Below are positions 1 through 61,200 of a stretch of 64,000 bases of DNA, piece by piece (positions within the stretch are counted from its first letter, which is position 1; each line of letters starts with the position of its first letter). Position numbers and translations under genes: made by a program. Source of the DNA: Macrostomum hystrix (taxonomy: Eukaryota; Animalia; Platyhelminthes); the NCBI GenBank assembly GCA_950097015.1, contig CATNEN010000031.1, positions 496,001 to 560,000 on the forward strand, given 5' to 3'. A model generated the notes under the pieces. That model made no database searches. It was not told where the DNA came from and worked only from the letters and a program-made list of their open reading frames with translations.

Positions 1-1089
1 GTCATACAATTGTTTCTCTACTAAGTAAATTACATCGTGTCGTAATAGGACATGTGCGTTTCTTATTGAAAAAGTTCAAAAAAATGTGATAAAATTCTAA
101 AAACAAACAAAAAAAAAAAGTAGAATAGTTATGTACAAAGCTACGGTATGATTTTCCTTAGAAGAGAAATATTTAGCAATTGGTGAAGCAACTCACCAAA
201 GCCGCATCAATAGCGAGGGGCTACCAGGAAGTTGTTTAAAACAAAGGACTATAGTCGATTTATTATATATGGTGTACTCAGTTAAAGAATTCAGGCAGCG
301 CTGACCAGCATTACCACATATCAAAACTTAGGCTTTAAAAGAAGCCTTTGTAGGAGCCGGCCGACTCAACACAGGTAAAGGACCTGTCAAGTGATTTGCA
401 GCATTAAAAGTACACCGGAAAGGGCTTTTTATTGTTATAGCGCGCTTCAATAGGCTCAGTAGGATAGCAGACCTTCTGAGGAGAGTTATACTCTTGGCAC
501 GAGGGACTGAGCGGACACAGAGGGGGGAAGAACTCACTTAGGCTCTGTACACTGCGTCTATCTGACTCAACTCTCCAGCAAACGCGGCAGCCCGCCCATA
601 GCGCTGAAGATCTGCTACACAGCGTGTTAGGGTAAGTATTTGTGCCCCCAACCTAGGTAGCCAGTCCACGAGACAACCTCGAGGCATTTCTGAATAAAGT
701 GAAATGCGTAGCCCAACTAGCCGATAAGGCCGAAAGCGGAAAATTAAAATGCTTAATCATTAAAAGTGCATGAGTATAAAATGCTGCAACCATATTATTT
801 AGCCGAGCGCACACTCACGATAAGCGCGACAAAAATGCACTTATTTATTTGTCTAAGGCAACAAAAATTTTTACATATTGACAGCACCACCTGGCCGGAA
901 ACGTATCCGATACCTCTACCCCATTTCTCATATTTGAATTTCACTTAAAATTTTGTGAGATCCTAGATAGATCAGAGCACACACTGACAGGATACTTTGC
1001 TGAAGTCAAGCTGATTAAATACGCATCACTTACATTCATATCGTTTGCGGCCAACTCCGCAAAGAACCAATAGACTTGAATACCAGCAT

Positions 1090-4000
1090 ATGAATAACGG
1101 AACTCTTGACCAAGACATTCAAACAGGCACTAACAGAACTCCAGAACCCGGAGAACCTGAACAGCAACAACTGCAACAGCAGCCAGGAAACCAGTTAGAG
1201 CACGACGACGACAACCACGAGCATTCATCAGACTCGGACAACGAGGACAACGCAATGGATGATCTCCAGAACCAAGTCCGCGAACTACAGCAACGTCTAG
1301 CCATGGCACACGGCAGGGACCTACCAGCCATTGTCCAAGCTCTCAAGCTATCGGCAGGAGACTACGAAATGGGACAGCCATTTATCAAATGGCTAACCGA
1401 ATTTGAACTGCAGACAGCGACATATGGCCTAACAGATGGAGAAAAATGCCGCCTGCTACCACTCATGCTGCGCCCTAACGCACGTAATCAATACGCGGGA
1501 CTCCCACAAGCCGTCCGAGAAGACTATGGACAGGTACGAACACAACTCCGACAGCTGTATGACACCAGAGCGATAGACCGACCTACGGCGGTACTACAAC
1601 TCTCCATGAGGAAGATGCACCCAGGAGAGGACGTCAACAAGTTTATAGCCGACATCACACAACTGGTTGAGAACTCAGTGTTCCAAGAACCAGCTCCGGA
1701 AGGCGAGAACGACCATGACAGAGGCGCTAGAATCAACCGCAACAAGCGCATCATCCAGGACCACATCATGCTACACGTGCAACAGAATGCCACACCGGCA
1801 TTACGACTATATCTAGCCAGAGGACGTTACCAGACGGTCCCGGAGATGGTGCGTGAGGCGCTTCAATGGCAAGCACTGCGAGAGCTCGAACAGGAGTCCA
1901 ACGACATACACAAGCTGACAGCCATTGTAGCTCAGATGGAGACTACAATCAAGAAAGCGGATCAGCGCAACCAGGACCGAGGCCCACAGCCACAGAAAGA
2001 AGCAAGAACTAAGTACCCAGAAGACAATCCGAGACCGACATGCCAGATCTGTAACAAGATAGGCCACACTGCCAACAGGTGCTATCAAAGGAACATGGAC
2101 ACCGATCACTTCGCAAAGGATTGCAGAGGTCAGCGATACTGCCAGAACTGCGACATGAACAACCATTGGACGTCGGAATGCACCCGATCACGCCGGAGTT
2201 ATCAAGAACGGCGTCAGCAGCAGTGGCGACAGCCAAAGCGGATCGCAGAGGTCACAGCTCAGGACCCCAGTCCGCAGCCAGCCGAATGGGAGAATCAGCC
2301 CAGCCAGGCTGCACACATCTTGGCAGTCAGCACGTCGGAAGCGACAACACTGACAAGGGCGAAAAGCGACGTCATACAGGCAAGGCGACAGAACAGGAAG
2401 ACCAAGACGGCGACAGTGGCCCTAGTTCAAACCGCTCCACAGCTCGAAGGACGAAAGCGAGAGCAGAGGGCTAGACAGACTAGCAATCACGGGAAGGCAC
2501 CGGTAGGACCGACATGCGCACTTCTGCTGAAAATTCTACTTTTCGCATGGCTCTGTACCACGGCGGAAACGATAAACCAAGGACACCAACAATGGGTGGA
2601 CACACCGATGTACTGCCCGGAGCCCACCAGGCCACAGATCTTCAAGCTGCCACCGGATATCGAGTGCAAGATGCCTAGCAGCATACAGCAGCACCGACAG
2701 CCGATCAACCTGACAATCTTCAAACCAAACCAGGTCACTCACCGATCAACACTCAAGATCTGCTATCGAGAAACGTATGTTTTCACCAGTGTGGCACTAA
2801 CAACGATTATAGCCAAAGTGGTAAGACCAAAAATGACTGTTACGGTGCAGAAACATCCGGTCACAGAGGAAGAGTGTGAGTCCTGGAAGGAAGGATACCA
2901 AACCCCAGATGGCACCCTTCAGGAAGACGGGAAAGCTCCGAACAAAGCGGAACGCTTTACTACTCATATCTGGACAGTAGAGGAATTCGAACCAACGGCT
3001 AGCACCCAAACCAGATACACAAAGTCAGCATCCACGCTGATAACGAAAATTCCGTTCTTCGTGGAGAATAAGAAGATGTCATCACTGTACATCCCACTAG
3101 GTCATTGTAATTACACCATTGGAAAATGTCTTCACGAGTCCACTTTAAAGGTCGAGAAGGATGCGCCGTTAGAGAGACAAGTACCCAACAAACTATGGGA
3201 AGCTCTGCGATTCTACGACACGACATTCAAGGTCGCTGGAGAACGCCAGTACAGATATATCTGGACACCCAGCGCTGCAATTGACTGCCCGTACCAGGAA
3301 GACAGGCGTATAGAAGGAACTATCCACACGGGATGGTTCATGGCCAAGGATGCAACCTACGCCTTGACTTTTAAGCACCCGCCACACTCAATGGAACTGA
3401 AATGCGGAGGAACGACAACTAAACTATTCAGGTCAGAACAAGGAAAGCTGGTCAGGCCAGAAGGATCCGAAGCAGAATTCCTATTAATAGTACAAGGCAA
3501 TTTTAACAACTCTAGCACAGCAAAGAGAGAGAAGAGGGACCTAGTATCACAAGAAACTTTAGCAGCGAAATTACAGAGCATTGAACTTACGATGGAAAAT
3601 CGAATTGGTGATCTGACCCGTCATGTGATCCTTCAGCAATGCCGAATCCAACAGAACATTTTCAGATACATCAAGGATTTCATACGAATGCAACCAACAC
3701 TAGCAGTGAGGACACTGTTCAAAGACGAGCATCTCAAGGCCAGAACGATAGCTCAGCACGTCGAAATCTTCAAATGCATCCCAGTGACTGACTTCGAATT
3801 CCATCAACCATACTGGAATCAAAGCCGATGTTTCTCCAAGCCTCCGTTGAAGTACAAAGTAGCGGAGACCAACCGTACAGGATTCTTGAATGTAAGAACT
3901 ATGGAAATTGAGACAGAATACCCCACCTTTCAGGAATGTTCGAATCAAACTGGGTACCTTCTACCCAAAGAGGACAGAGTGTACAAGGCCGACTTAAATT

Positions 4001-5631
4001 TCACCAACTTCGAACCTATACAGATAAGGAAATTGAAGAGCGAAGATTGGGGAATAGAGCCTATGAAATTACCGAAGATCAAACGAATTCTTTTTATACC
4101 AGAAACAGATATCAAAATAGAAGACATCCGAAGCCCGATTACGGTACACGATCTGTACACGCAGATGAGGGACCAGAGAGAATTTCTGAGAACAGTATTC
4201 AAACTACCAAAGCAGAAGAATCCAGAAACGATCGACCTCCCACCATTGGAGGCAAACATAGCTCTTAAAACTTATGACTTCGCATCTTGGACGCCATGGA
4301 TAGGTATAAAACTCAATATTTTCAACATAACAGTTGGATTTGCCGCAATTTGTGTATATGTGTACATCATACTCAAAACTATAATAGTTTGTCACAGGCT
4401 CCTCCGGCAAAAATACGAGCGACCAGGCATCCGAGCAATTCAAAGACGGATAAAGGCAACACAAGAACGACACGAATTGCGGGGACAACCCAGCACAGGC
4501 ACTAGCGACAGACACACGGGCCCGCGGCGCCCAGCACCAACGGCACCGGCTACAAGCGCGGAACAGAGTCAGCCGATGATGCCGTCAGCTCCTCCAGCTT
4601 CATCAATCTACCCGACGATTAGCGCCTGGCCACCGCCGATAGTGGCAGCAATCACGAATAGCCAGAAGTACACGGTGACGCGATTGAAGATCGGCATGCG
4701 AACCTGCAGAGCGCTGATCGACAGTGGAGCAGAGAAATCACTGATAGATGAAGCGACGGCACACCGCTACAGTGACAGCTTCGAAAAGCCGACAACTGAG
4801 CTGCAAGGAGTACACGGAGGAAAGCTCACGCAATCCGGAATGATCACGTTACCAGTCGAAGCAGGAGACACAATCGTCAACGTTAAGTTTCATGTCATTC
4901 CGAATTTGAGTTCGGGGAGATACCATGCACTATTAGGAATTGATTACTTAAGTCAGTTGCAGAAGGGCATGTCTATTAATTACCAACAGCAACAGATACA
5001 GTTGAATGGCAGATCGTATGAAATCATGACAGTAACTGCCCAGGAAGCCACAAATAAGATCAGATTAGTCTCCGTGGTAAACCTGAATCCATGGGAAACA
5101 GCTCAAATCACAGCTAGAACCGACTCAAAGGAGGAACTGCCTGACACTGTACTTTTCGAGCCAGATACGCGTATCATCGAGAAGAAGGTGATAGACAGAA
5201 TGGAGATGCAAGGGATTCTCATGAAAGCACCGACACCGTATATTTCACCAATTCTTCTCGTCAAGAAAAAATCGGAGTCACCGGAGGCTAAACCAGTGTA
5301 TCGCCTGTGTGTGGACTTCAGGGACTTAAACCGATTGTTGATTCCCGAGAGACAGTGCATGCCCAGGATTCAAACCTCAGTCACAATCCGAAAAATCGAT
5401 GATCCAAATCAGGAGTCTTTTCAAGTGCACACGGACAGGCTGAAACCAATGGCCACGCCTACACCACATGTGATGCTTCCTGACCTCAGACCGAGCGACC
5501 CACAGCGACACCAGCGACAGCCCAGACAACGATTCACCAAGGAAGTGAGCGTGCAGGCAGAAGAGCTGGATGCGCAAGCTGACAGCGCTCGGAAGAAGTA
5601 TAACCTGAGGAGCAAAGTGAAACTTCCTTGA
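1090..5631 (+). CDS. Gag-Env-protease-(deleted Pol) polyprotein
   Basis: First ATG at 1090; no stop until 5629-5631. Capsid-like FIKWLTEFELQTATYGLTDGEKCRLL; knuckles CQICNKIGHTANRC and CQNCDMNNHWTSEC; hydrophobic signal CALLLKILLFAWLC (~2515-2556); furin site REKR (3526-3537); gB-like QPTLAVRTLFKDEHLKARTIAQHVEIFKCIPV; TM (~4318-4392); protease LIDSGA (DSG 4720-4728) and ALLGIDYL; RT stub SPILLVKKK...RLCVDFRDLN...MPRI; IN tail VHTDRLKP...YNLRS. Confidence 0.9.
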   Translation: MNNGTLDQDIQTGTNRTPEPGEPEQQQLQQQPGNQLEHDDDNHEHSSDSDNEDNAMDDLQNQVRELQQRLAMAHGRDLPAIVQALKLSAGDYEMGQPFIKWLTEFELQTATYGLTDGEKCRLLPLMLRPNARNQYAGLPQAVREDYGQVRTQLRQLYDTRAIDRPTAVLQLSMRKMHPGEDVNKFIADITQLVENSVFQEPAPEGENDHDRGARINRNKRIIQDHIMLHVQQNATPALRLYLARGRYQTVPEMVREALQWQALRELEQESNDIHKLTAIVAQMETTIKKADQRNQDRGPQPQKEARTKYPEDNPRPTCQICNKIGHTANRCYQRNMDTDHFAKDCRGQRYCQNCDMNNHWTSECTRSRRSYQERRQQQWRQPKRIAEVTAQDPSPQPAEWENQPSQAAHILAVSTSEATTLTRAKSDVIQARRQNRKTKTATVALVQTAPQLEGRKREQRARQTSNHGKAPVGPTCALLLKILLFAWLCTTAETINQGHQQWVDTPMYCPEPTRPQIFKLPPDIECKMPSSIQQHRQPINLTIFKPNQVTHRSTLKICYRETYVFTSVALTTIIAKVVRPKMTVTVQKHPVTEEECESWKEGYQTPDGTLQEDGKAPNKAERFTTHIWTVEEFEPTASTQTRYTKSASTLITKIPFFVENKKMSSLYIPLGHCNYTIGKCLHESTLKVEKDAPLERQVPNKLWEALRFYDTTFKVAGERQYRYIWTPSAAIDCPYQEDRRIEGTIHTGWFMAKDATYALTFKHPPHSMELKCGGTTTKLFRSEQGKLVRPEGSEAEFLLIVQGNFNNSSTAKREKRDLVSQETLAAKLQSIELTMENRIGDLTRHVILQQCRIQQNIFRYIKDFIRMQPTLAVRTLFKDEHLKARTIAQHVEIFKCIPVTDFEFHQPYWNQSRCFSKPPLKYKVAETNRTGFLNVRTMEIETEYPTFQECSNQTGYLLPKEDRVYKADLNFTNFEPIQIRKLKSEDWGIEPMKLPKIKRILFIPETDIKIEDIRSPITVHDLYTQMRDQREFLRTVFKLPKQKNPETIDLPPLEANIALKTYDFASWTPWIGIKLNIFNITVGFAAICVYVYIILKTIIVCHRLLRQKYERPGIRAIQRRIKATQERHELRGQPSTGTSDRHTGPRRPAPTAPATSAEQSQPMMPSAPPASSIYPTISAWPPPIVAAITNSQKYTVTRLKIGMRTCRALIDSGAEKSLIDEATAHRYSDSFEKPTTELQGVHGGKLTQSGMITLPVEAGDTIVNVKFHVIPNLSSGRYHALLGIDYLSQLQKGMSINYQQQQIQLNGRSYEIMTVTAQEATNKIRLVSVVNLNPWETAQITARTDSKEELPDTVLFEPDTRIIEKKVIDRMEMQGILMKAPTPYISPILLVKKKSESPEAKPVYRLCVDFRDLNRLLIPERQCMPRIQTSVTIRKIDDPNQESFQVHTDRLKPMATPTPHVMLPDLRPSDPQRHQRQPRQRFTKEVSVQAEELDAQADSARKKYNLRSKVKLP

Positions 5632-5798
5632 CAATTGATGCCAAGGAAGGGAGAAAGTAGACGGACAATTTTACATTTTTAATTTTCATTATTTTGTTGG
5701 TGTGCACTCTGATTTTTAGAATATAATATTTTACATTACTTATAAGTAGTCACTATTCAACCACTCACAAATATTTAACCCACCCTCTGGATAATCAG

Positions 5799-6563
5799 AT
5801 GTATTCGACGGAGCTAGACACAGTGGATGATTGTACTATCGATGAGCCACTTACGACCTACACATTGGTCAAGCCATTGTTTGCATCGGCAGAACCAAGC
5901 ACGGCAGTCGGGAAGGAGATGAACATTAGGAACAACGCCGCCACTGAACAGCAACGGCGACACCTCCAAACCCAATGGGAGATCAGAAGATCTAGACACA
6001 GTAGATCGCCGTGCCCAACAGTGCTGAGAGAGAGACACAGACGGGAAGAAAAAGACCTATCATTTACGGAGCTGTACGACTTCATGGATAGACAGCCCAT
6101 CCAGAGCAAGCCAAATCGGCACGGTGAGATGAAACTATTTGACATTCACCTGGACATGCTGGATGCGCCACGAATCCCAGCTAACGTAGTAACACATCTG
6201 ACCACAAAGCGCATCCTAGCTGAGGACAATAACCCCATCTGGCTCCTCTCTGACTATAACATTCTACGTAACCGTACAACAATCTTCTTTCACTATGGAG
6301 AACAAGACGCCTTTACTTGCGTCATAATTAAGGCACTCTGCCGTACGCTATCCGTCAACCTGATCCACCCTTGGGGCCCGCAACCTAATGTGATATGTAC
6401 TAAGTTATTTAATTACTTGTCCAATGCGTTGGTTTATCACGGAATTCAAAGTAGTTGCCGCGAAATGAAGATGCTAGTAGTTCGAACGTATTCGCCGGCG
6501 TTGCTACAGTGGCCACAGCTAAAGACGGCACCGGAAGCCTCGCAAGAGCCTACTCGTCAGTAA
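5799..6563 (+). CDS. Retroelement accessory ORF (254 aa), possibly a degenerate integrase-core paralogue
   Basis: Open ORF between the polyprotein and the PPT; ATG directly preceded by CAG after a T-rich tract. Motifs DIHLDMLDAP and AFTCVIIKALCRTLSV...PWGPQPN echo the rve core by eye. Confidence 0.6.
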   Translation: MYSTELDTVDDCTIDEPLTTYTLVKPLFASAEPSTAVGKEMNIRNNAATEQQRRHLQTQWEIRRSRHSRSPCPTVLRERHRREEKDLSFTELYDFMDRQPIQSKPNRHGEMKLFDIHLDMLDAPRIPANVVTHLTTKRILAEDNNPIWLLSDYNILRNRTTIFFHYGEQDAFTCVIIKALCRTLSVNLIHPWGPQPNVICTKLFNYLSNALVYHGIQSSCREMKMLVVRTYSPALLQWPQLKTAPEASQEPTRQ

Positions 6564-7111
6564 GAATTTAGGGACGTGAATGTAAGGGCATAAGGAGACA
6601 CGAGAGCCGAGACACTGACACAATGTTAAGACAGATGGGTCGTCTCGACCGGAAGTCCTATCATTGTGACACTCTCACTCAGGTGCAATCCTGAGGCTAG
6701 AACCAGTTTCACGGAAAGAACTTTGGGAAAGCGCCTCGCTACCTGAAGCATCGGACCAGTGAACTAGGGGAAGCCAGGCCCGTCAATCAAAGTGAATTTA
6801 AGCTTAGAATAATAAAGAAGCACGAAGACAAGCTCTACTCAAATTCCATGATCCAACACTCAGTGTTTTACAATTTTAATGATTCCCTATTAATTAACTT
6901 AACACTAAAACCACGCATACTCACACCATATTATTCACTATTTACAACAATGCTTAAACGAATGAATTATACACTTACCCATTTAGCCTCTTAATCTAAT
7001 ACTTTCAGATTTCAATGTCTTATATGTTCACAGACCTACTAGCAGTAGGCAGATTGGCAATCCGAGGAAGGCAATAGGCTACATCTCCCTTGACCAGTCA
7101 AGGATTTCTTC

Positions 7112-7121
7112 AAAAGGGGGA
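7112..7121 (+). promoter_or_regulatory. Polypurine tract (plus-strand primer)
   Basis: TTCTTC-AAAAGGGGGA immediately before TG; typical gypsy PPT. Confidence 0.8.
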
Positions 7122-7781
7122 TGATATAAGACTTAGAAATCTGAATGGAATTTAAGCGAGCGTTAGTTGGTAACTAAAACTAAAAATAGCAACAGCAGAA
7201 AGTGCGAGCAACCGAAAGGAGAATGATTAGACAAAATCCGCCCCCAGAGATTAACTATTCATTTCAGCGCAGGCCCGGTTCGGCATGACAGCAGCTGTGC
7301 CGACGTGGAGCTGGCTGAGACCGGATCCGCAGAGGCGCTGACGTGGAGCTGCCGGAGACCGGAACGCAGCTGTGCTGACGTGGAGCTCCCGGAATCAACC
7401 CGGCCTACCCCGACCTGCAGCTGCCTGCATCGACCCAGCCCAGTCTGAAATTGGAGCCGCCCGGACCCGATCGGGAACGAGATCTGGAGGAGGCCGGAAC
7501 CGCACAAGAAGACTGGATCGATGAAGGGAAAGGGGATAATGAACAGTAGGAAAGAGGTCTCAGTAGAATTGGGAACGCATCCTAACTCAACTAAGGTATT
7601 TTCAGGACTTTTCCCCACCTCCCATAGAAAATGGGTTGGCGTGCCTGCTAACCAACTAGTTTAATGACAACAACTGTACTAGACTCGAGGCTGCGACCTC
7701 ACTCACCCCAAATTCTCATGCGTACTGTTGCTATGGTATTTTCTTCCCCTCGGATCGAGGGTTTTAAAGACATTATATATA
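7122..7781 (+). repeat. Long terminal repeat (~650 bp)
   Basis: Bounded by the PPT on the left and a TGG-starting PBS-like site on the right. Starts TGATATAAG and ends near AAAGACA (7772) or ATTATATATA (7781). Contains short internal GCTGACGTGGAGCT repeats. No second copy in the window to confirm the limits. Confidence 0.7.
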
Positions 7782-7782
7782 T

Positions 7783-7797
7783 TGGTGCGGAGCGCGG
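7783..7797 (+). promoter_or_regulatory. Primer-binding-site-like sequence TGGTGCGGAGCGCGG
   Basis: Begins with TGG (complement of tRNA CCA) just after the LTR end. Cognate tRNA not identified. Confidence 0.5.
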
Positions 7798-8049
7798 AAA
7801 AAGATTCGCCGCTCCAGTTAGTTAGAGACTCACTTTGAGCTCCGTTTAGAAAATCATTGTGGTTGCGTTCTTTCTTAAGTAGAATCAGTGATAACGATCT
7901 AGAGATATCACCACTGCCAGCCGGTATACTGAGTATCGATAGTCGTTAGGAGTTATAGCCTTCAAGACTTTTAGACTGCAATAAACCGCTAGACAAAGTA
8001 TAGGAAAACTACGAGTGAAGAAGAAGAGGAACACCAAACTTGAAGCGCT

Positions 8050-10428
8050 ATACGTACCAGCGCGGTGGCATGAAGCCCGGGTCGTCTTCATCCCGAAGCC
8101 CGCCAAAGGCGACTATCGCTCGGTCAAGTCTTATCGCCCGATAAGCTTGACTTCCACCTGCCTCAAGCTCATGGAAAGACTGGTGCTCTGGCGCCTTCTT
8201 ACTGTAGAGCTAGGGCGGGCCCCGCTCTCACCAAACCAGCACGCCTTTCGGGCGGGCCGGTCCACGGAGAGCGCCCTCCACTGCATTGTGGAGACTCTCG
8301 AGAAGGCAGTGCTGGGCAGCGGTTTTGCCCTGGCTGTTTTCCTTGATATTGAGGGGGCCTTCGATAACGTTATTTTCGAAGCCTTTGAGAAGGCCCTGGT
8401 TTCCAGGGCCACTCACCCCCACCTCGTCCGTTGGGTCATGTACATGATCCGGAATCGCCACGTGGTGGCCCACCTCGAAGGCAGGGTGCTCTCGGCACCT
8501 GTCCTAAAAGGAGGGCCCCAAGGTGGCGTCCTCACCCCACTGCTGTGGAATCTCGTCATGGATGAGCTGCTAAAAAGCACTCGGCCTGACCCAGTCCTGA
8601 AGGTGGGATATGCCGACGATGTGACCGCCATCTGCGCGGGCCCCTCGGCGGAAACCACCAGGGACCTCATTCAGGGCTTTATCAACAGGGCGGTGCGCTG
8701 GGCGGACCAATGCGGGCTCCGACTCTCTGAGTCCAAGACCGTTGCGGTTATGTTTACCAGCAGGCTGCGCTGGACCATTGAGCCTCTGACTCTCTATGGC
8801 AAGAATATTGCCATGGAAAAGCAGGTCCGGTGCCTTGGTATCCTGCTAGACCATAGGCTTAACTGGACCCCGCACATTACCACAAAGGCCAAGAGGGCCC
8901 TGGCCATTCTGGCGCAAGTCAGGCGAGCCGTGGGCACCACTTGGGGGCTAACCCCCAAAAACCTTTGGTGGATTTACACGGCGATCATTAGACCGTCAGT
9001 CGCTTACGCTGGCCTCATCTGGGCCAGTGCCATGAGCATCCAGAAAAACCTGGAGGCGCTTTATAGGGTGCAGGGCAGAGCCTGTCGCATGACGCTGGGC
9101 GCCCCACCCTCCACTCCCTTTGAAGGCATGAACGCTTTCCTCAACGCTACACCCATTGACATTTTTGTTAAGGGGGAAGCGGCAAAGTCCACCCGTCGTC
9201 TCCTTGATGCGGGTGTATCCTTCCAGAATTCGCGAGCCTTCTCGAAGCGCTCCCTTCTGCCCCACTCTGACCTCTGCCTGAAAACTCTGGGCGAGTGCGG
9301 AGGGCTCACCATCCTTTCGGACGGGGCCCCGGCCACTTTACTCCGGAGCCACAGGTACAAAGTCAGCATCTTCCCTCGTAATGAGGTAAAGGACTGCTGG
9401 GATGACCCCGCAGTCCACTGTTACACTGACGGCTCCCTGATGAACGGTAAATCGGGATTCGGGGTGTGCGTCGCCTCGGGTGGCGAGGTCCTCTGGACCC
9501 ACTCCCAACACTGTGGCAAGAGCTCAAGCGTTTTCCAAAACGAAATGCTCGCCATCAGCTTCTGTGCGGCTGAGCTGCGCCAGAGGCAGCTGGCTGGTCG
9601 GAGGATCTTTTTTCACTCCGACAGTCAAGCAGCCCTCAAGGCCCTCAGTCGCTGCACCTCTCGCTCCAGAACCACCTTGGACTGCAACACCCAGTTAAAC
9701 GGTTTGGCGCAGTCTAACAAGGTGGAGCTGATGTGGATCCCTGGGCACGCCGGGCTCACAGGGAATGAGATGGCGGACGAGCTTGCAAAGGCTGGAGCAG
9801 CCAGCTCCCTGATGGGCCCGGGCCCGGAATCCCCGATCCCCGCCTCCGTTGTCAACTCCAGCATCAACCACTGGATGGAGACCCAGCACCGGAGGAGGTG
9901 GTCCAGCACCCTGAACTGTCGCCAGTCCAGGGCTGCGGTGCCAACCCCCTCTAGTAACCTGCGTAAGGCCTTACTCAGGCTAAACCGCAGAGACCTGAGA
10001 GCAGTCACCATGGCCCTTTCGGGACATGGCTGCTTCACCAGACACCGCTACCTCCAAGGCCACGTGCCTGAGGAAACGTGTCCTTTCTGCTGCTCCGGCC
10101 GTGAAAACGCCGAGCATTTCATTTGCCACTGCCCGGCCTTCACCCGGGCTAGGCTAAAACACCTCGGGCCGGCACCGACTCTTGCCGAAGCCTGCTCGCC
10201 CGAGAACATCCCTCAGCTCGCCCACTTCCTCCGGGATACCGGCCGAGCTGATTTCTTCCCAGCCTATGGCGAGGAAGATCGCGCGGCGGAACCGACCGAC
10301 GGACCACCCTGAGCGGCACCGCCTCGCTGGAGGCCGTCTGGCTGCCAGGGGTTAGCGATATGGGCGGCAACAGCCGCCTCCTCGCTGCGTCCGTCATGGA
10401 GGCCCCCTGCCGCTAAGTCAAGTAAGTC
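8050..10428 (+). mobile_element. 5'-truncated non-LTR retrotransposon with RT, RNase H and CCHC (LOA/R1/I-group-like)
   Basis: Open frame to 10312: [33 protein letters not shown]; RNase H YTDGS / NEMLAI / SDSQ / WIPGH / NEMADELA; CPFC...EHFICHC. 3' tail TAAGTCAAG x2. No TSD found. Confidence 0.9.
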
Positions 10429-25818: not shown

Positions 25819-25966
25819 GGGGGTTGTAGCCTAGTGTTTAGAGCGTCGGACTCACATCTTGAAGGTTCGGGTTCGATTCCCGACTCCACTGGAACAATTT
25901 GTGTCCTTTAGCAACTCACTTTACTCTGCATTGGTTCAGTTATCCCAGCTGTTAAATGGGTACCAG

Positions 25967-26007
<41 letters not shown>
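25819..26007 (+). mobile_element. tRNA-derived SINE (short copy) with (TTA)n tail
   Basis: A-box-like TAGCCTAGTG, B-box GGTTCGATTCC, core CCCAGCTGTTAAATGGGTACC; related copy at 29.0-29.3 kb. Confidence 0.8.
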
Positions 26008-28525: not shown

Positions 28526-31500
28526 ATGGAAATCCGAATTTTCGGCGCCTTTGCCGGTCGCAGCAAGGACGGTAGCTTGGCACTAGCCGTGGCGCCAGCC
28601 TCCAGCCTCAGCCAGCTGCTCGCACAGCTCTCATCGGCCGCTGGCATGCCACTTAGCGACTATTTCAGGTGACTCTTGTTTACCATTGTCAACTTCTATG
28701 ATTTGAATATTTGAAGGTGAAGTCTTATTCTTTTACAGGTGCGTGGATGAGGACGGCGACCTGGTGACAGTCCACGACGACAACGATCTTCAGCAGCTGA
28801 TCGAGTACAACAAGGTGGTTATGTTTAACTGCAGCCAGCAGGGCCAGTCTGCCATGCTGCAGCAGCAGTCGGCGGGACATGTGCCTCGTCCGCCTCAGCT
28901 GCCGGCCCCTTGGATTTCAGGACCGCCGTCGGCCTCCTTGTCTCCGCTGACGCCGCCGCTGTCTACGCAGCAGTCCCTGTCTCCGCTGCCGGTGAGGCTA
29001 CCTGGCTTTCACTGTTTATTGCCTAATAATTGATAATAAAAATAATTATGCCTGCCCCGATTGGGCCAGATATGCAGCCGACAGCACAGCCGCAACTATT
29101 GCGCGGAGCATCTGAAGGCTGCATACGGCTGTACGCAGGGGCCATAGACTGGAGGTACGCCACACCCACCCTCAATCACCCCAGCTAATGCTGGTACCCA
29201 TTTAACAGCTGTGTGAACTGAAGCAATGCAGAGTAAAGTGTCTTGCTAAAGAACACACATTGTTCCACTGGAGTCGGGAATCGAACCACCGACCTTCAAG
29301 ACGTGAGTCCGACACTAAGCTACAACCCCCGGATCCCTGTAGATACAATAGAACAGTGATCTAGAATACTCAGCACTCAATTCGGCATACATGGAGTCGG
29401 GAATCGAACCAACGACCTTCAAGACGTGAGTCTGGCGCTCTAGTCACTAAGCTACAACCCCGTGTCCTTGTAGATATAATAGAACAGTGTTCTAGAATAC
29501 TCAGCATTCTATTCAGCTTACATGTACTTTGATTCCCCCCCGCGGCGCAGCCAACCGCTGGCTCCACCGCAGCCGCATCCGGTGCCCCGGTTATTGGCAA
29601 CTCTGGCCAGCTGTCGCAGGAGCAGTTCGCCTACGGTCAGGTGATTGGCCGCGGACAGTTCGGCATTGTCTACAGGGCTGTGCACAGAGCCACCGGTACG
29701 CCCTTGGCCATTAAGTGTATCAATCCTGAGATGGACGAAGCTGTCCAGTCCAAGATTCTCAGCGAGCTGGAGATCCTGGCCAAATGCTCCTCGCCTTACA
29801 TCATTAGCTACCTTGGCGCGTTCTTTGTTGAGAATTCGATTCACGTGTGCACAGACTGGATGGACGGCGGCTCCTTAGACAAGTACGGCCGGCTGCCCGA
29901 GCAGATTCTCGGTTAGTTTAACCAGCTCTCTGACCAATGCTGAGCCATGGGGCTCTGAATCTAGATCAAACTGGATAGACAACCTCCCGCCAAACCCCCA
30001 TTTTCCGGACCATTGTAGACTGACAGGCTGTCCCGAAAATACACAGGGCAAATAGAAAATTCTTATGCACATCTTGAAGAAAAACACTGATAGCTTCCGT
30101 ATCGTGCAATATATTTCAGAATGTTAGTTTTATTAGATAATTGAATAAATTCTCTTGAAGCTGAGTCAAGTTTTAGTTTTAGTCTAAAGTTTTGGCTTGT
30201 AAGCTGTTCTTAACAGTAGACTACCAAGAGGGGAGAATTCCCCCCCCCACCCTGACAATTTTTGTGCTGCACCCGAACGGAACGGAAGCACATGAAACTC
30301 AAGAACGCGGGCCAACTTTTTTGCGCATCTTCTGAAACAAGAATCAAGTCGCTAGCTCTTTAGACCGTCGAGATATTCAATGTTTCTGGCCGAGGGCAGA
30401 TTTTTCCCATAAGCGAAATAAGTGTATTTCATACACTCCTATAAAAATTAGCACTGCGCCTCAGTACGGCCTGCCAGGCCTTCAAAACTTATCAGCATGT
30501 CACCCGAATGTGCCTGCATTATCTCCTACTTCCGTGGTCACCTACCTTTATCCAGACGGACTGCTGGACCTTCAAGGGCTACAATGGAAGTAGGCCACTA
30601 TGGACACCCTGACGTGAATTTCTCCAATTTCACAGATCAAACCTAAATATTAGGCGCAGTTCAACCATCGTCTAGTCTGTCAGCCAATCAGTCACTGTCA
30701 GTTAGGTATCAGGTACACAATCAAGAAAAAAATGGCGGCAAAATGGCTTCGTAGTCCAACTGTTCAAATAAATTTTAGAAATGAAAAAGTTGCCATTTAG
30801 CGATGCAGATCTTTAGAAATTTGTGAAGCAGAAAGGTTTTTTATTAATCACCAGATTTTAGTGCGATGTAGCTTGAATGGTAGAAAACATCAATACCTAT
30901 GGAATGAATTACTGAACTTTAAGGAAGGGAAAAATGAGAAAAATGTCTGCATTATAACTTTTCGAGTACATGTCTGGAAGATGCACACAAGCTCAGCTAA
31001 ATGTAGATGATTTATTCAGCTTTCTAATGAAACTAAAGTTTTGAAAATATGCTGCACTTTAAGGAAGTTATCTGCGTTTTTCTCCAAGTAGTGTGCATCA
31101 GGATTTTCTATATGCTTAGTGTATTTTCGGGACAGGCAGTCAGCACCCACACTGGTCTGGAAAATGTGGCTTTGGCGTGGAGTTGTCTCCCCAGTTTCTA
31201 GAGCTTTTCATGAGTCTATCAGTGTGTGGGATAGTGTTAGCGATGTAAATTTGATTGCCAGAGAATGATTTGAGCAGCTGCAAGTTCAAATCGAATCTAA
31301 TAATGATGCGATTGATTAGTCTCTATCATGTCTCTCTCCTACATCAATCTCATATTTTCCCTCAAATCAGGCTTCGTCTGTCGGTGCGTAGTTGACGGCC
31401 TGCGTTACCTGTGGATGAAAGGTGTCATGCACCGCGATGTCAAGACGGCCAACATTCTTGTAAACTCAGCCGGCGAAGTGAAGCTATGCGACTTTGGCCT

Positions 31501-34560: not shown

Positions 34561-36414
34561 CTCAAACCGGGGCGAATTCCGGCCAACCCCGCCGACGCTT
34601 GGTTTGGCGGCGCCGAACGGGGCAGCGCGACGAATGCTGCCCCCAATCAGCCTCATTGGACGGTGGAGGACGAAGGCAAATCGAGCGAGCCAATGGACGC
34701 CTGCACCGCGGCCAGCCTGGGCGACGCCGCCTACCTTGAGCAGGCTGTGGCCGACGGCCGGCTACCGAGAGACGCGCTGGACAAGGCGAATGCCAGCGGC
34801 TGGACGCCTTTAATGTACGCAGCCTATTTGGGCCACGAAAGCCTGGTGAGTCGATGGCGCTCCCGCTGTATTCAAATTTCTTGTCTAAGGCTTCTTATAT
34901 TCTCTTATATTCCTTATCGTATTGTATACATTGCCCAAGGTCAAGCTGCTGCTTGAAAAGTACGGCGCCTCAGTTAGCGCCACAGCCGACAAGCGACGCC
35001 GCACTGCCCTGATGCTGGCCTGCAGCTGCGGGCACCGCGCATCCGCCATAGCTTTGGCTAACGCATCATACTCCACGACTGGCGGCTCCGAGCTGCCCGA
35101 CCCGGTCGACTTGGACGGCCGCAATGCCGCTATGCACTGCGTCTTGTACGGCCAGCGTGACTGTCTGGAAGATCTCCTACTGCGCTGGCAGCGACTGCGC
35201 TCCATCTGCGGCCTGGAGCACCTGCGCCAAGCTATGCTGGGCGGTCACACAGCCACTGCGGAGCTGCTGCTGGACCGTCTCTATGGAGCCCGCGTGCCAG
35301 CCGACCTTGTCAGGCCCAATAGCGAACGAGGCCACGAGCGGCTGGTTGGCACCGACTCCAAGCGGAAGGCGCCGGCTCTGCTGCCAGCCGCGCCGCCAGC
35401 TAGCGTTGAGGCAGTGTTTGCTGAGCTCCAGCTAGCTAAGTATGCTCACCTGTTTGATGGAATGCCAATGCACGACTTTCTTCGGCTCACGGAAGATCAG
35501 GTAGGCTGCCAGTGTTGCGGCTTTCTGCTTTGTTTGTTAAAGTGTCGTGACACCCTTGTGACATAGTAACACTAAGTCATTTGAAAAATGCAGATCCCAT
35601 CCCATTTTCGTAATCTTATTGTACAAGCTTATCCTATTTGCGGGATATTTATGTACCTTCACATTTATATACAAGTGAACATAGATCTCTATTAAATTAT
35701 AGTTTAAAGGTGTGAATTAACTAAGGCTTAACTAGTTAGAAACTTAACTACTATGAAGGTTATTGGCAGAGAACTCTAACGCTCTGCCTCTCGTACCAAG
35801 GTCCCTGAGCTCGATTCCGCGGCGAGGCCACATTCATTTGGGGCGCAGCTGCGGAGAGAGGGCTTGGGGGGCTTGTCGTGCAATTTACGCCCACGAGGGC
35901 CAACCTCCAAGGCACAGTAAAAGTGTACACTGCCTGACAATACGAAAGTCAGGGCAGATGTACTGACTTCTCGCTGGCTGCAGGTCTAGTGTCACTAAAT
36001 GATGTCCCAACAGCAATTAACATTATTATTATTATTAAACTATTGACGGGGTATTTATTTACTTTGCTGAATATCCATTAACAGGTGATAGCAAGAGGCC
36101 TAACCATAATTGGACCGAAGCGCAAACTGGTGAGCTACCTGACACAGCTGAGATCAAATCAGGCGACGCAGCCACCGCCGCAGCCGCAGCTTCCGTCAGC
36201 GGACACCGCAGACAGTATCAGGCAGGCGAAAGCCAGCGCCCAGCTCCTGCAGGAGATTATCGAAGATCTGACAGCCGAGCTAGGCAAGTGTGCTCAGCCG
36301 GCTAAGGTTGAGATTTGGCTTCACAAGCTGGGAGTCACGACCAACCAGCTGCGGGCTCACTTGGACCGGGCCACCGCCTCTGGCAACTGTGGGGATAAGC
36401 ATCTGTCTAAGTAG
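34561..36414 (+). CDS. ANKS3: Ankyrin repeat and SAM domain protein 3 (compact, ~390 aa)
   Basis: Exons 34561-34845, 34940-35500, 36085-36414. MDACTAASLG, GWTPLMYAAYLGH, TALMLACSCGH, SAM LAKYAHLF...FLRLTEDQ|VIARGLTIIGPKRKL. Start uncertain: acceptor at 34560, first ATG at 34693. Confidence 0.82.
35762..36035 (+). mobile_element. Second SINE-like family in ANKS3 intron 2
   Basis: tRNA-like head (GAGCTCGATTCC B-box-like) and (TTA)n tail. Confidence 0.55.
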
Positions 36415-38964: not shown

Positions 38965-39470
38965 TTAGGACTACCAAGCCATTTTGTCGCCCATTTTTAT
39001 ACCAAGGGGTGCGGGAATTTCCCCCCCCCCTGAAAATTTTCTTGGCAGCGCCCGAATACTAACAGCGTTGGGTGTTGTTAGTTTCCACCTGTTGTAGCCC
39101 TTGAAGGTCCAGCAGTCCGTCTGGATAAAGTTATGTGACCGGAGATGATGCAGGCACATTTGGGTGACATGCTGATAAATTTTGAAGGTCTGGCACTGTG
39201 GCGCATTGCTAACTCATGTATAGGGCTGTATGATATATTATGGGAATGGGAATGGTTTATGGGAAAAATCTGACCTTCGGCCAGAAACATAGAATATCTC
39301 GACGGTCTAAAGAGCTAGCGACATGATTCTTGTTTCAGAAGATGCGCAACAAAAGTTGGCCCGTGTTCTTGAGTTTCGTGTGCTTGGGTTGCTACTTTCG
39401 GTGCAACCTGACAAAGAGTTGTCAGGGGGATTTCCCTCCCCCTTTGTTAGTTCTACTGTTAAGAATATCT
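38965..39470. mobile_element. MITE-like repeat, copy 2, with imperfect inverted ends
   Basis: Shares ~390 bp (inverted) with 30205-30595; ends CTACCAAG..GGGAATTTCCCC and GGGGGATTTCCCTCCCC..TTAG. Confidence 0.7.
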
Positions 39471-50351: not shown

Positions 50352-52616
50352 ATGCACTTTCAAGCTGGAAAATTGGGGCACTTGCTGCTGCTGCTGCTGC
50401 TTGGAGCCACCGTTAACTCCGCCTCGGCCAGCGGGCCCAGGCAGACCATCTATGACGATTTGCTGAGGCACCTGTTTGCTAATGACAGCCTGCCATACAA
50501 GCCCAGCGCAATGCCCATCTGCGAGCCAGGGGGCCGGCTGCATGTGAGCCAGGACATGCTACTGCTGCAGCTGTTCGATCTTGACGAGCCCACCCAGATG
50601 CTGACGGTAGATGTCTGGGTGGAGTCAATCTGGAAGGACTGCCGCCTCGGCTGGGACCCGAAGAAATTCGGCGGCATCGACAATTTCGCCATCAAAGCCT
50701 CAGAGATCTGGTTCCCTGACTTGCTGTTCTACGAGTCGCTGCACGGCAACTTCGAGGAGGGCATGTTCATCTACGGCGAGGCCACGGCCAGGGTGTTCAG
50801 CGACGGCTCAGTGCAGCTAGGCACGCAGGCTGTGTTCAAGGTCAGGTTCTGTAGTGGAATTACGTGAAATTAACGTGTACACATTCAAGGATCACAAGCA
50901 GTTGGCTACTTTAGTAGTCCATGTTCACATTCTGCAGCGTTATGTATATGCTTTATGCCTCAGTGCTCGCGCTCATGCCTGACTCTGAATCCGTGCTGCA
51001 GGTCTTCTGCCGCGTCGACATCTCCAGCTTCCCCTACGACAGCCAGCGGTGCAACATCACCTTCAGCTCCTGGACGAAAGATTCCTCCACCTTCCTGCTG
51101 ACCAAGAAGCCGTCGGACTCCTCGTCCGATGACCATGCCTTCCAGAGCGCCAGCAACGGCGAGTGGCAGGTCGAGGGCTTCCCCTCCTTCAACCGGGTCT
51201 CCAGTCGGCGCGTCGGTGTTGACGAAGCTGACGGTCGGGCGCGCGACTACACCGAGGTTGTGTTCCAGCTACGGCTGAAGCGCAAAAACCTGTTCTATCA
51301 GGCCTACATGCTGTTCCCCTGCATCCTGCTCACCTGGCTCACCCTGTTTGTCTTCCTACTGCCGGCTGAGTCTGGCGAGAAGATGGGCTACGTGACCACC
51401 ATCCTGCTGTCTCTGTTTGTGTTTCTGCTCCTGGTGGCCGACAATATTCCCCGCTCCGGCGACTCCGTGCCTCTGGTTGGCGTGTACTTCTGCCTGGCTA
51501 TCGCCCTCGTCAGTCTAGCCAATGTCAAGGCTGTGATCAGCTACAATGTCTCGCTGAAGGGCTCTGACTTTTGCATGCCGAAGGGGCTGAAGTGGCTGCT
51601 GTCGCGCAGTCGCTACGTCGGACTTCGCCAGAGCCCCAGGTGGGAGATTCGAATTCGCGTTGCTCAGCTAGCCGTTTCTTTACCAAAGAGCACGCTATTT
51701 CTCCCTGGGAAAAGACCCCGGGGCTATTATAAATACCCACTGCCTACTTCACGATAGCTCCCAAACCGAATGGTCCATTTTCGTGAAAGTCCGCCATATG
51801 GATCAAAATTTTCCGCCCTTCACGATAAACTACTTTCAAATCTGTCCAAGTCAGCATCATCGATATATTCAGCGATTGCCCTGTATAAACCACCAGACAC
51901 TCTGACGAGAATCGTTGAATATCTCGACGATGCCAATGTTTTTTTATTCTGGAAGTTGTTTAATCGGATAGAGCGGGGAAATTGTAGCCCGTGTTCCGGA
52001 TTTTCATGGCGATTGGTTGAATATTTAAGAAGATACAAAAAAGTTGTGCATTTGAAATATCCCGCTGTCTTAATACTGTCAATACTTGTAGCTTCGTAAC
52101 CTCCTGCTTATCCAAGCTGTCTGGAGTCGCTGTCTCTTACAGCTGGGTTATAACACTGCTAAGAGGGGTGTCTTAGCCTAGTGGTCAGAGTTCTGGACTC
52201 CCAAATTAGAGGTGTGGAGTTCGAATCAAGGAAAGCATCTGGTCCAAATGGGTTAGGCTTCATTCTATCAGAATATTCTGTCTAGTCAGCTGCTTGCGGA
52301 CTGTCAGTATTCCAGTCTATGCAGTTACAGTCTATGTCATTCTCACCTTGTTCTCAACAATGTCAGGACATCTGAAGAGTCGCCACCGTTGGATGAGGAC
52401 GGTGACAGCCAGCAGCCGGGGGCGGCATCAGTGTCCGCGAGGCGCAGACAGGAGGACGAGGGCACGAACAGCAGGCACAGCAGAACTGACGCGAATCAGT
52501 GGCGATTCCTCGGCATCATGCTGGACCGCATCTTCTTCATTGTCTACTTCTTCGCCAACCTGGCTGTCACCGTCTGGATCCTGAGCTGCGGCGAGCGAGA
52601 CATGGTCGGACGCTGA
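50352..52616 (+). CDS. Cys-loop ligand-gated ion channel, non-alpha nicotinic receptor-like subunit
   Basis: Exons 50352-50840, 51002-51639, 52367-52616. Signal peptide, IYDDLL, WKDCRLGWDP, IWFPDLLFY, Cys-loop CRVDISSFPYDSQRC, GEKMGY before M2, M4 LDRIFFIVY; no vicinal CC in loop C. Confidence 0.9.
52165..52230 (+). mobile_element. SINE head fragment
   Basis: TTAGCCTAGTGGTCAGAG...GAGTTCGAATC, related to the 25819 head. Confidence 0.45.
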
Positions 52617-58213: not shown

Positions 58214-61200
58214 ATGGGAATCTTGAGCACAATTCGTGGTAAACTGCGAGGTGGCAAACGGCCAAACTCCAGACGCTTAAAAGACAGCTCTCTAAGCCAC
58301 TTTTGCGGACTTCGAACTTCGCTCAACTCGACCGAAAACACATCCAGTCCAAGGAAGAATATCGAAATGACACAAAACTCGTCCATCAGCAGCGGCGGCG
58401 ATTGTGCAGCTATCGTAGTCGCTGGAGAGACTAGAAACACGGAAGCAACCACAAGCAATAATTCAACTGTCACTAGAGCTGTGGCCTTGACAATTTCGGG
58501 GGAGGATGCGGACGCACAAGGCCGCAAGCACACGCGGCGCTGCTTTGAGGCTATCTATTATATGCTGTTCAGTCGCTGCTCAGCCGATTGCTTTCTGCGG
58601 CAGGCTGTGACTGGCGCGCTTATTGACCTGCTGCTGTTGAGTCAGAAGATCTTAGAGCCTAACGCGACCAAGTTGGGGTGTTCAAGTGTAGTAGACTTGT
58701 TTGCTGTGGAAGCCTGCGGTTTGTCTTTCGGAGCGGTGAGGCAAAATGTTTTTATGTCAAATCTTGCTTAACAAATCTTAGGCGCATCTAATTTGGCATG
58801 ATTCCGTGAAAAAATAGCACTATGCCGGCGACACCGTAGAATTGCTTCATTGTCTGAAATGAAAGTATCATGGCTTTCTCCTAGTACTTTTGATATACTT
58901 TACCTCACTTTCTTAAAACAGGCGGAGACTAAAACCTCTCTATCAGAGTCGGATTTGACAATCTACAGTGGATTAATTAATACCAGTGAAAATTTCTGCA
59001 GCAACGTGAACAACGTCAACATCAACAAAACACCAAAGGAACTGATTTCAGCAACAGCTACGACGTCAAATCTTGCTGCCACCACAACAGCCAAGGACTT
59101 AGATCGAGGCCTGGTCGGAAGAAGGGCTACGTTAGAATCGAGCCCAGACCAACTCGAATCTGACAGAAGTCGCATACTTCGAAACCAGATCGTCCACCGC
59201 GGTAGTCGCTTGCAGCCTAGAGTTCGAGCGATTCAGTCGGGGACAACACGGACCGTTATAAGAACTGCGACAGCGACAGCGACTACAACAGCTTCGTCAT
59301 CTTCAATCGCATCGGAAACCACTTCGGCCTCAGGGTTTAAGTCGCGCTCATCATCCTCTGCGCGAAGCAGTTGTGGTTCATTCTGCACACATTTCAGTCG
59401 GAAGAGCTGCTCCACCGAGCAAAAAAGCCAGTCGAACCGTCGACGGGATGGTTTGCTAAGAGACGTCGGTGAAGAAAAAGCTGCATCGGATTCTGAAAAT
59501 CGTCGACGTCAACGCGAGAAAAAGTCGCGACAGTCATTGAATCAGAGGCAACTTCAGGAGCGACAGAAGGAGAGACACAGAAAGACGAGCCGCGAGTCAC
59601 CGTTGTCGGTTGACTCTGACTTAAGTTACGGAACTTTGGACGAAGAAGCTGAAAGTACTAAAAACAATTTCGACAGAGATCAGATAGCGAAGCATGGTAG
59701 TCATGGACGACGTAAGTCCTTGGTGCCCCGAGACTCAAGCGTTGAACATCGGCGAGATTCTCATCGCGACTTGCGCCCTGATGCTGTTCGCAAGCCTCGG
59801 CGTCGTCGGCAGAATTCCCAGGATGATGACTGGTCAGAAACTGGAAGCCAGCTCCGCCATGAGACCGAAGCAAAGCGTTTGCAAATCTTCAAGAATATGC
59901 GACAGCCACCCGATCAGTACCAGTACCAAAGTCAGTCCCAAACGGATACTATGTCACAACAGCAAGGAGTTCCGCTGCCAAGAGCTTGGCGTGCATTTTC
60001 TGATAGCAACTCAAATGAAGTAACGGAAGAGGAGTGCCACCTGTGCGAGCTGGTTGACATGCGAGGTGCAGCTTGGCGCTTGAGCAGTGCTACAGTCATT
60101 GATCCGCATAAAACTAGCAGCTTCCAGCGCATCCTATCGCCTAGAAAGCAACGGCGCCGTCGGCATTGTCGGCAGCGCTCACGTGAGAACCCAGAGCAGC
60201 AAGTGGTTGAGCAGCCACCGATGCACATTCCGATTCAGCCCACTGCGCCGCGATGCTGTCGCGTTATCGACATCAAGATAGACCGCTATCGCAAGAAGGA
60301 CGCTTGTCCATGCTGTAGTAAAGCTGACCCATGTTACAAGTCAGATCCATGTAGCCAGTGCAGTTGCCAGGCGCCTCGACCTCCGGCTGAACAGTTAGTA
60401 TCCAAGGCCCATTGTATCGGAGGCGGTGAAGTACGAGGTACCGGAATCTGCGGAGTAGCAGCAACTTTAGAATTCGACTGCTGCAGTTGCTGCTGCGTTA
60501 GCGGCGGTGGTGGCGACGCCAGCAGTTCGTCTTTTTCTACTCGCCAGAGTCGGGACAGTCGGCGCCGCAGCCGAAATCGCAGTCGCAGCAGTCGACAGCG
60601 GCATCGGAATGACAGCTCAACGGCCTGGCGGCGTAGAGGTTTACATTTTGCGCTTATTTTTATCGAGAAAGTCGCTACGAGCGAGCGAACTCGTATAATA
60701 TCATGGAAGAACTCTTTGAATTCGCACATGTGTAGCCATCACTAATTAAAAATACCATTTTAGATGGCCAGAGCCACTCCACCTGTGATTCAAGGCACAT
60801 AGTCTCTAAGCGTGGGTCTAAAAGCGTGTCCCGAAGCTTCAGTAAAAAAAGATGCCGTCACGACTCCTCGCAACGCTGCTGCTGCTGCTGCTGCAGACGC
60901 TGTTTGGAGAACGCTGATGCCGACTGCCAGCTCTCCGGGTGGAAATCAGCTGATGGGGGTCGCAGCATTCGCGGAAAACGCGGTGACGGTGGCGCAGCCT
61001 CTCGTAGCAGCATGGAGGATGAAACGACGCCACAGTCAAAAGCATCTGTTTCGCAAACAGCTTGTCCACAATCACTGGTTTCTCAGACGGCGAATCAGCA
61101 GTCTATGGGTTCGCCATGTCTCGGACCACCAATTTATGGCCCCGAAACAATTTCTCAACGAAGTATTGGTCCACAAAGTTTTAGTCCGCAATCTCTTGAT

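Follow-up and report, generated by a model that had tools for sequence, protein, structure and literature searches.

We examined a 64,000-nt stretch of the genome of the flatworm Macrostomum hystrix (assembly GCA_950097015.1, contig CATNEN010000031.1, positions 496,001 to 560,000 of the forward strand; this whole stretch is referred to as the window and is the source of all positions below). It contains a retrovirus-like element in which the envelope gene (env) lies between gag and the protease. On the forward strand, 1528 codons in a row (1045 to 5631) were free of stops; the first ATG of this frame is at 1090, and gag, then env, then protease and pol were read from it in one frame and on one strand. 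Chance could be excluded as the origin of the frame, because the probability of 1528 codons without a stop was about 10^-31.6 at the base composition of the region, because 200 shuffles gave no stop-free run longer than 195 codons, and because the other two forward frames contained 88 and 53 stops. The feature is a divergent and defective copy of the element, with a Gag, Env and protease frame free of stops and frameshifts (Table 1).

The frame opens with Gag. Two CX2CX4HX4C zinc knuckles were located at 2041-2082 and 2140-2181; the match of this part to Pfam zf-CCHC was weak and below the cut-off (E 0.006), and the Cys and His columns of the knuckles were invariant, or almost so, across the aligned relatives. 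At 24% identity, this Gag was alignable (BLASTP E 2e-22; tblastn 1e-20) with that of P0001, a full-length relative from Macrostomum lignano described below, and also aligned with the Ty3_capsid/Retrotrans_gag region of P0043, a relative encoded on a metagenome contig. An AlphaFold2 (AF2) model of Gag had a pLDDT of 79.8. Its best 50 matches in the PDB were all retroviral, Arc, PEG10 or PNMA capsids, with TMt values of up to 0.78 for the C-terminal lobe and weak E-values (at least 0.036).

Env follows as an ectodomain of about 580 aa, rich in cysteines and N-glycosylation sequons and flanked on both sides by hydrophobic segments, as judged from hydropathy. The first of these segments reached a Kyte-Doolittle maximum of 1.83 and the second, stronger one a maximum of 2.34; both were helices in the AF2 model. 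A counterpart of the first segment was found in most relatives, and no in-frame ATG occurred just before it in the ORF (open reading frame) sequence. The middle part of the frame holds 16 cysteines, 12 of them between the two hydrophobic segments, and nine sequons, as compared with three in Gag and one after the transmembrane segment (TM). Its sole RxKR is a furin-type REKR, which the AF2 model places in a low-confidence loop just ahead of a 46-residue central helix (3553-3690). The segment QQCRIQQ...EIFKCIPV, in which the preliminary description of this stretch had seen a resemblance to herpesvirus glycoprotein B (gB) and chuvirus glycoprotein (G), was located at 3634-3786.

Four comparisons agree on what kind of protein this is. 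The middle part (2485-4440) matched Pfam PF24664, the Monjiviricetes fusion glycoprotein, at 34.9 bits (curated cut-off 27), and 19 of the 40 relatives in the alignment matched it too. Compared directly by sequence with the PDB, the env piece gave nothing meaningful; gB was reached only by family profile and fold comparison. The profile, built from 40 family members, matched gB of varicella-zoster virus and Epstein-Barr virus in the PDB with E-values from 8.4e-15 to 2e-13. The fold comparison used an AF2 monomer model built from the 40-member family alignment (pLDDT 77.8; predicted TM-score, pTM, 0.48). The best 50 Foldseek matches to this model in the PDB were all herpesvirus gB, at probability 1.00, with about 630-750 aligned columns and E-values down to 2.7e-21, and the highest TM-scores belonged to prefusion gB. 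Among the predicted viral structures of BFVD, the leading matches were Nyavirus midwayense G and Beihai rhabdo-like virus 3 G (E down to 5.9e-28), and the other top matches comprised entomopoxvirus proteins, gB, chu-like G and the G of Socyvirus heteroderae, a nyamivirus of the soybean cyst nematode. By sequence and modelled fold, the middle domain is a class III envelope protein of the gB or Monjiviricetes-G type, and fusion activity is predicted for it.

Downstream of Env, the protease matched Pfam RVP at 33.1 bits (cut-off 20.7) and gag-asp_proteas at 30.5 bits (cut-off 28.2), with the DSG active-site motif inside the profile-matched retropepsin. Little remains of pol after that. The beginning of the reverse transcriptase (RT) was 35-42% identical to P0001, P0037 and P0043, and its best PDB sequence match was the Ty3 Gag-Pol polyprotein (E 5.8e-4). 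Further pol domains, namely the RT core, RNase H (RH) and integrase (IN), are missing; by comparison with P0001, pol has suffered at least one large in-frame internal deletion, of about 0.75 thousand residues, and the remainder contains no stops and no frameshifts. In tblastn searches, five full-length relatives detected no other pol-like sequence in any part of the window. Since pol has been lost, this copy would be unable to reverse-transcribe or integrate alone and could supply at most Gag, Env and protease.

Relatives were sought by searching the env piece against 1.8 billion representative proteins, which gave 68 matches; the long ones were scanned with Pfam. Env stood upstream of the protease or RT in the same protein in 15 clusters, each no more than 50% identical to the others, from a flatworm, nematodes and metagenomes (P0001, P0004, P0009, P0022, P0023, P0030, P0031, P0034, P0036, P0037, P0042, P0043, P0046, P0062 and P0064). 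Several of these clusters carried the full series of gag, env, protease, RT, RNase H and integrase, and gag together with env was found in four further clusters. In none of the Pfam-scanned relatives among the 68 matches did env follow integrase. The pol of the relatives consisted of RVT_1, RT_RNaseH, Integrase_H2C2 and rve, in the order protease-RT-RH-IN. In most relatives, two hydrophobic segments lay about 530-580 aa apart and enclosed an RxKR, and the protease followed the second segment at a distance of about 100-150 aa. The named hosts were Globodera rostochiensis, Meloidogyne enterolobii and M. incognita; P0043 was an uninterrupted ORF of 8226 nt on its metagenome contig. In P0043 and P0030, both from metagenome contigs, two separate aspartic-protease matches occurred after env (at about residues 1186-1294 and 1482-1582), suggesting a duplicated protease region.

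The relative from M. lignano was the one inspected at the DNA level. P0001 is the product of an uninterrupted 8559-nt ORF (2852 aa) on contig NIVC01000270.1 of assembly GCA_002269645.1 (Macrostomum lignano Mlig_3_7). Its locus, L001, is flanked by 575-nt direct repeats, the long terminal repeats (LTRs), which are 99.3% identical overall and differ by small indels or mismatches. The repeats start with TG, and a TGG... primer-binding-like site comes right after the left one. The element (684-14049 of L001) has a 2-kb leader and is inserted in a 15-nt minisatellite; it is apparently complete and very young. The window ORF was collinear with P0001 over gag, both env halves, the TM, the linker, the protease and the RT start, at 24-31% identity over gag, env and protease and 40% over the short RT start, and the two share the same two-span topology with an RxKR before the central helix. 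Unlike the window copy, P0001 has about 215 aa extra inside env, a complete RT-RH-IN and the 575-nt LTRs.

Judged from these sequences, the gag-env-pro-pol order is a trait of the lineage, present in full-length relatives, and neither a rearranged single copy nor an assembly chimera. The preliminary description had read the same anatomy from the letters of the window, namely a single stop-free frame with knuckles, signal segment, REKR, TM and DSG, and each of these was recovered where it had been placed. Its proposal of a class III, gB- or chuvirus-like envelope was borne out by Pfam, by the family profile and by the AF2 and Foldseek comparison that it had suggested for the env translation. 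Its placement of env in frame between Gag and retropepsin agrees with the Pfam matches and with the collinearity with P0001. The lineage that it had postulated, with full-length members of the same order and an intact RT-RH-IN, was found when relatives were searched for: at least 15 clusters had env upstream of the protease or RT, several of them with the full series of domains, and none of the scanned relatives had env 3' of integrase.

Table 1. Features of the element and its surroundings in the window (positions in nt unless marked kb)
Feature	Position	Strand	Basis
Whole gag-env-pro-(pol remnant) ORF	1090..5631	+	Frame open from 1045; collinear with P0001
Gag, with an acidic N-terminus, a core of capsid-like helices (about 1264-1990) and two CCHC zinc knuckles	1090..2484	+	Direct reading, alignment to relatives, AF2
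Internal hydrophobic segment (signal or signal-anchor), start of envelope part	2497..2574	+	Kyte-Doolittle, AF2 helix
Class III (gB-like) fusion glycoprotein ectodomain, with REKR at 3526-3537	2575..4311	+	Pfam, AF2 and Foldseek, family profile
Transmembrane anchor of envelope part	4312..4404	+	Kyte-Doolittle, AF2 helix, kept in relatives
Linker, basic then Pro/Ala/Ser-rich; would be the envelope cytoplasmic tail leading into the protease	4405..4674	+	Sequence; aligns with P0001 linker
Retropepsin (aspartic protease, family A2), DSG at 4720-4728	4675..4965	+	Pfam RVP, gag-asp_proteas
Broken pol: RT beginning and short tail	4966..5631	+	Identity to P0001, P0037 and P0043; Ty3 PDB match
Stretch that may be the element's 3' untranslated region (uncertain)	5632..7900	+	A-rich strand bias
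Minisatellite arrays	21.6-23.1, 26.8-28.5, 31.7-33.8, 38.0-38.5, 40.0-40.4, 42.5-43.0, 44.2-45.6, 47.2-47.8, 48.6-49.7, 53.6-54.0, 62.0-63.2 kb

The region 3' of the large ORF may perhaps belong to the element as well, because the A-rich strand bias persists beyond it, with an AT skew that stays positive to about 7.5 kb. A 254-aa ORF (5799-6563, forward strand) lies directly 3' of the large one on the same A-rich strand; it matched no Pfam family, did not resemble the 3' region of L001, and may be an accessory ORF or merely part of the 3' region. The window flanks at 1-1100 and 5600-8050 had no similarity to L001 by tblastx or blastn. A search of the window for tRNA genes was negative.

Further downstream, a 765-aa ORF (8015-10312, forward strand) matched RVT_1, RNase H and, weakly, zf-RVT, in DNA with a GC content of about 0.59 as against about 0.45 around it. 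It is a 5'-truncated non-LTR (LINE, long interspersed nuclear element) retrotransposon, with relatives of about 1200 aa that have an N-terminal endonuclease; the nearest named relatives are M. lignano proteins (57-73% identity). The window is unusually dense in minisatellite arrays, with periods from 19/20 to 42 nt (most of 24-42 nt), many of which yield long spurious ORFs on both strands. Arrays of the same kind, with 15- and 24-nt units, occur at L001. Two inverted-repeat pairs were also observed. One (25870-25971 / 29186-29287; 102 nt, 91%) encloses the minisatellite array with the 35-nt period, and its two arms may be the termini of a DNA transposon or foldback element; the other is at 30317-30396 / 39274-39353 (80 nt, 95%). 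Three further ORFs were noted on the forward strand: one matching a Cys-loop neurotransmitter-gated ion channel over its ligand-binding and transmembrane domains (50921-51754), probably a host exon; one with ankyrin repeats (34922-35563); and one of 631 aa without a Pfam match (58850-60745). The channel match indicates DNA of animal origin, and the kinship of the LINE together with the style of the minisatellites makes a macrostomid flatworm the likely host.

The copy in the window is very likely a defective, pol-deleted Ty3/gypsy ("errantivirus-like") endogenous retrovirus-like element of the published GAG-ENV-POL type. Several points weigh against this assignment. No LTR or other direct repeat pair was detected in the window by a repeat finder or self-BLAST, no target-site duplication was found for this copy, and a search with the primer-binding-like site of L001 gave matches in the window at chance level. 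The left edge of the window may cut off the 5' part of the element; since L001 has a 2-kb leader, the 5' end possibly lies past that edge. In the collections searched (representative proteins, a whole-ORF word-index search and an exact ORF look-up), no protein was more than 36% identical. The assignment to Ty3/gypsy rests on about 60-75 RT residues together with relatives whose identity is only 24-31%, or 40% across the short start of RT. TM-scores to solved gB structures were low (0.22-0.32), as is to be expected when a protein of mobile conformation is modelled as a monomer, which was the case here; the pTM was 0.48, and domain orientations differ between the pre- and post-fusion forms. Lastly, a spliced mRNA that isolates env, or skips it, may be the actual route of expression.

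Of the other explanations for the copy, the one that fares best, and which we still consider quite unlikely, is that the pol-less gag-env-protease frame has been kept on purpose, either co-opted by the host or as a family of deletion derivatives that use the enzymes of full-length relatives. In the co-opted version, capsid and fusogen would work as a pair, either in transfer from cell to cell or in interference with viruses. The survival of a 4.5-kb stop-free frame despite the loss of RT-RH-IN, by a deletion that left the downstream part in frame, would fit such a history, as would the intact state of the knuckles, both hydrophobic segments, the RxKR and the DSG. However, an intact frame is equally expected from a recent deletion in a young copy, for which the prior chance of staying in frame is one in three. 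Nor was a second copy or ortholog present among the collections searched, and the locus lies amid satellites and a LINE fragment, which is not a gene-like setting.

The element could instead be a BEL/Pao element, as are the mosquito elements with chuvirus G, rather than a member of Ty3/gypsy. Malik and colleagues are also said to have described, in 2000, Ascaris Tas as a BEL/Pao element that carries a gB- or chuvirus-type glycoprotein. Glycoproteins of the chuvirus and gB types are known best from elements of the BEL/Pao group (PMC7642597), and it is this habit that makes the assignment worth weighing. We regard it as highly improbable here. The protease matched RVP and gag-asp_proteas and not the Pao peptidase family; env lies 5' of the protease and not 3' of pol; the pol of the relatives is made up of RT_RNaseH, Integrase_H2C2 and rve, and the best solved relative of the RT remnant is Ty3; and the published GAG-ENV-POL elements were placed within Ty3/gypsy (PMC13524379). 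The preliminary description had called the element gypsy-type. That reading held for the relatives, whose pol matches Ty3/gypsy, and for the RT start; for the copy itself, without an RT core, RH or IN, the assignment is made by proxy through these two and is accordingly a probable one.

Weakest of all, a chance juxtaposition deserves next to no credence. On this reading, a glycoprotein endogenous viral element (EVE) from a nyami- or chu-like virus would have landed within a gypsy element of the usual kind, or the assembly would have joined the two, and the shared frame would be an accident. In its favour, glycoprotein EVEs of Jingchuvirales are common in invertebrate genomes, often beside retrotransposons (PMC7642597, PMC10084718). 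It is excluded because the same gag-env-protease order recurs in one frame in at least 15 clusters no more than 50% identical to one another, including uninterrupted ORFs on DNA, because both junctions of the window ORF lie in a stretch collinear with P0001, and because the two-span pattern is shared, quite apart from a chance of about 1e-32 for an open frame of 1528 codons. The nested EVE and the chimera were rejected as refuted by the relatives with the same order.

The preferred reading, a pol-deleted member of the errantivirus-like Ty3/gypsy elements, places the window copy in a group that has already been described. Chary & Hayashi (eLife 2026, PMC13524379; preprint 2023) reported errantivirus-like Ty3/gypsy elements of Nematoda, Bryozoa and Platyhelminthes that have only gB-type ENV and are arranged GAG-ENV-POL. 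In that study, these elements fell within Ty3/gypsy, were not monophyletic, and had an ENV ectodomain flanked by a signal peptide and a TM or by two TMs. It credits the first nematode cases to Sacco et al. 2022 (J Gen Virol 103:001739). The preliminary description had not known of this order being described; that part did not stand, because the order is already published (Sacco et al. 2022; PMC13524379), and what the window copy adds is a divergent, defective member. Gag, env and pol are treated as ORFs in PMC13524379, the text of which does not contain the words polyprotein, single ORF or fused.

Comparison with the known systems shows where the window copy agrees and where it departs. The endogenous retroviruses of nematodes in which env precedes pol (Sacco, Lau, Godinez-Vidal & Kaloshian 2022) reportedly share the metavirus (Ty3/gypsy) backbone and a class III glycoprotein of RNA-virus type, captured and placed between gag and pol; the window copy differs from nematode elements in the phylum of its host, in an env only about 24-25% identical, and in the loss of most of pol. 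The Globodera and Meloidogyne relatives found here have exactly this layout, with env between gag and pol. Sacco and colleagues reportedly described, in 2022, a continuous gag-env-pro-pol ORF and a likeness to Nyamiviridae and Chuviridae. The "ancient errantiviruses" of Platyhelminthes and Bryozoa (PMC13524379) have the same gB-type ENV, GAG-ENV-POL order and flanked ectodomain, and a flatworm host fits this group as well; the window copy, not being intact, would have failed the criteria of that study. With herpesvirus gB and the G of Nyamiviridae, Chuviridae and rhabdo-like viruses (PF24664, PF00606), the window env shares a fold match over the whole ectodomain and a C-terminal TM, and its model suggests the same long central helix after a furin-type loop as in herpesvirus gB. 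It differs from all of these proteins in sequence (9-16% identity) and in lying inside the polyprotein frame of a retroelement rather than being a separate viral gene. The Drosophila errantiviruses (gypsy, ZAM, Idefix) and the mosquito BEL/Pao elements with chuvirus G are likewise LTR retroelements that gained a viral fusogen. In those elements, according to PMC13524379 and PMC7642597, a spliced RNA expresses env, which is an ORF of its own placed 3' of pol, and the Drosophila env is F-type (class I).

The layout suggests how intact members of the family might be expressed. Genomic RNA would be translated as one polyprotein, as the open frame implies. Gag would remain in the cytosol, and the internal hydrophobic segment would insert the chain into the membrane of the endoplasmic reticulum, leaving the ectodomain in the lumen to be glycosylated and disulfide-bonded. 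A furin-type protease would cut the ectodomain at the RxKR. The second membrane span would bring the chain back to the cytosol, where the protease and RT-RH-IN would follow, and signal peptidase together with the element's own protease would separate the parts. Because the number of spans is even (two), Gag and Pol would end up on the same, cytosolic side of the membrane. Because no in-frame ATG precedes the signal segment, a stand-alone Env would need either splicing to an upstream start or proteolytic release. We infer polyprotein translation, these cleavages and any present-day activity from the open frame and its anatomy.

A more far-reaching version of this proposal would hold that the pol-less frame is a maintained unit, whether as a gene for capsid plus fusogen taken over by the host or as a non-autonomous lineage that depends on the RT and IN of full-length relatives, and that the family as a whole relies on a single membrane-threaded, two-span, flavivirus-like polyprotein without a subgenomic env message. 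We consider this unlikely. If it were true, such a strategy would be one for which we found no description in the accessible literature for a reverse-transcribing element.

What the present analysis adds to the published gene order is an independent, tool-based confirmation that it recurs as one continuous frame in the genomes of flatworms and plant-parasitic nematodes. The arrangement of a cytosolic Gag, a membrane span, a lumenal fusogen, a second span and a cytosolic protease and pol raises the question of how these elements might make their envelope without a separate env message, a question that matters to some degree for how retrovirus-like envelopes arose.

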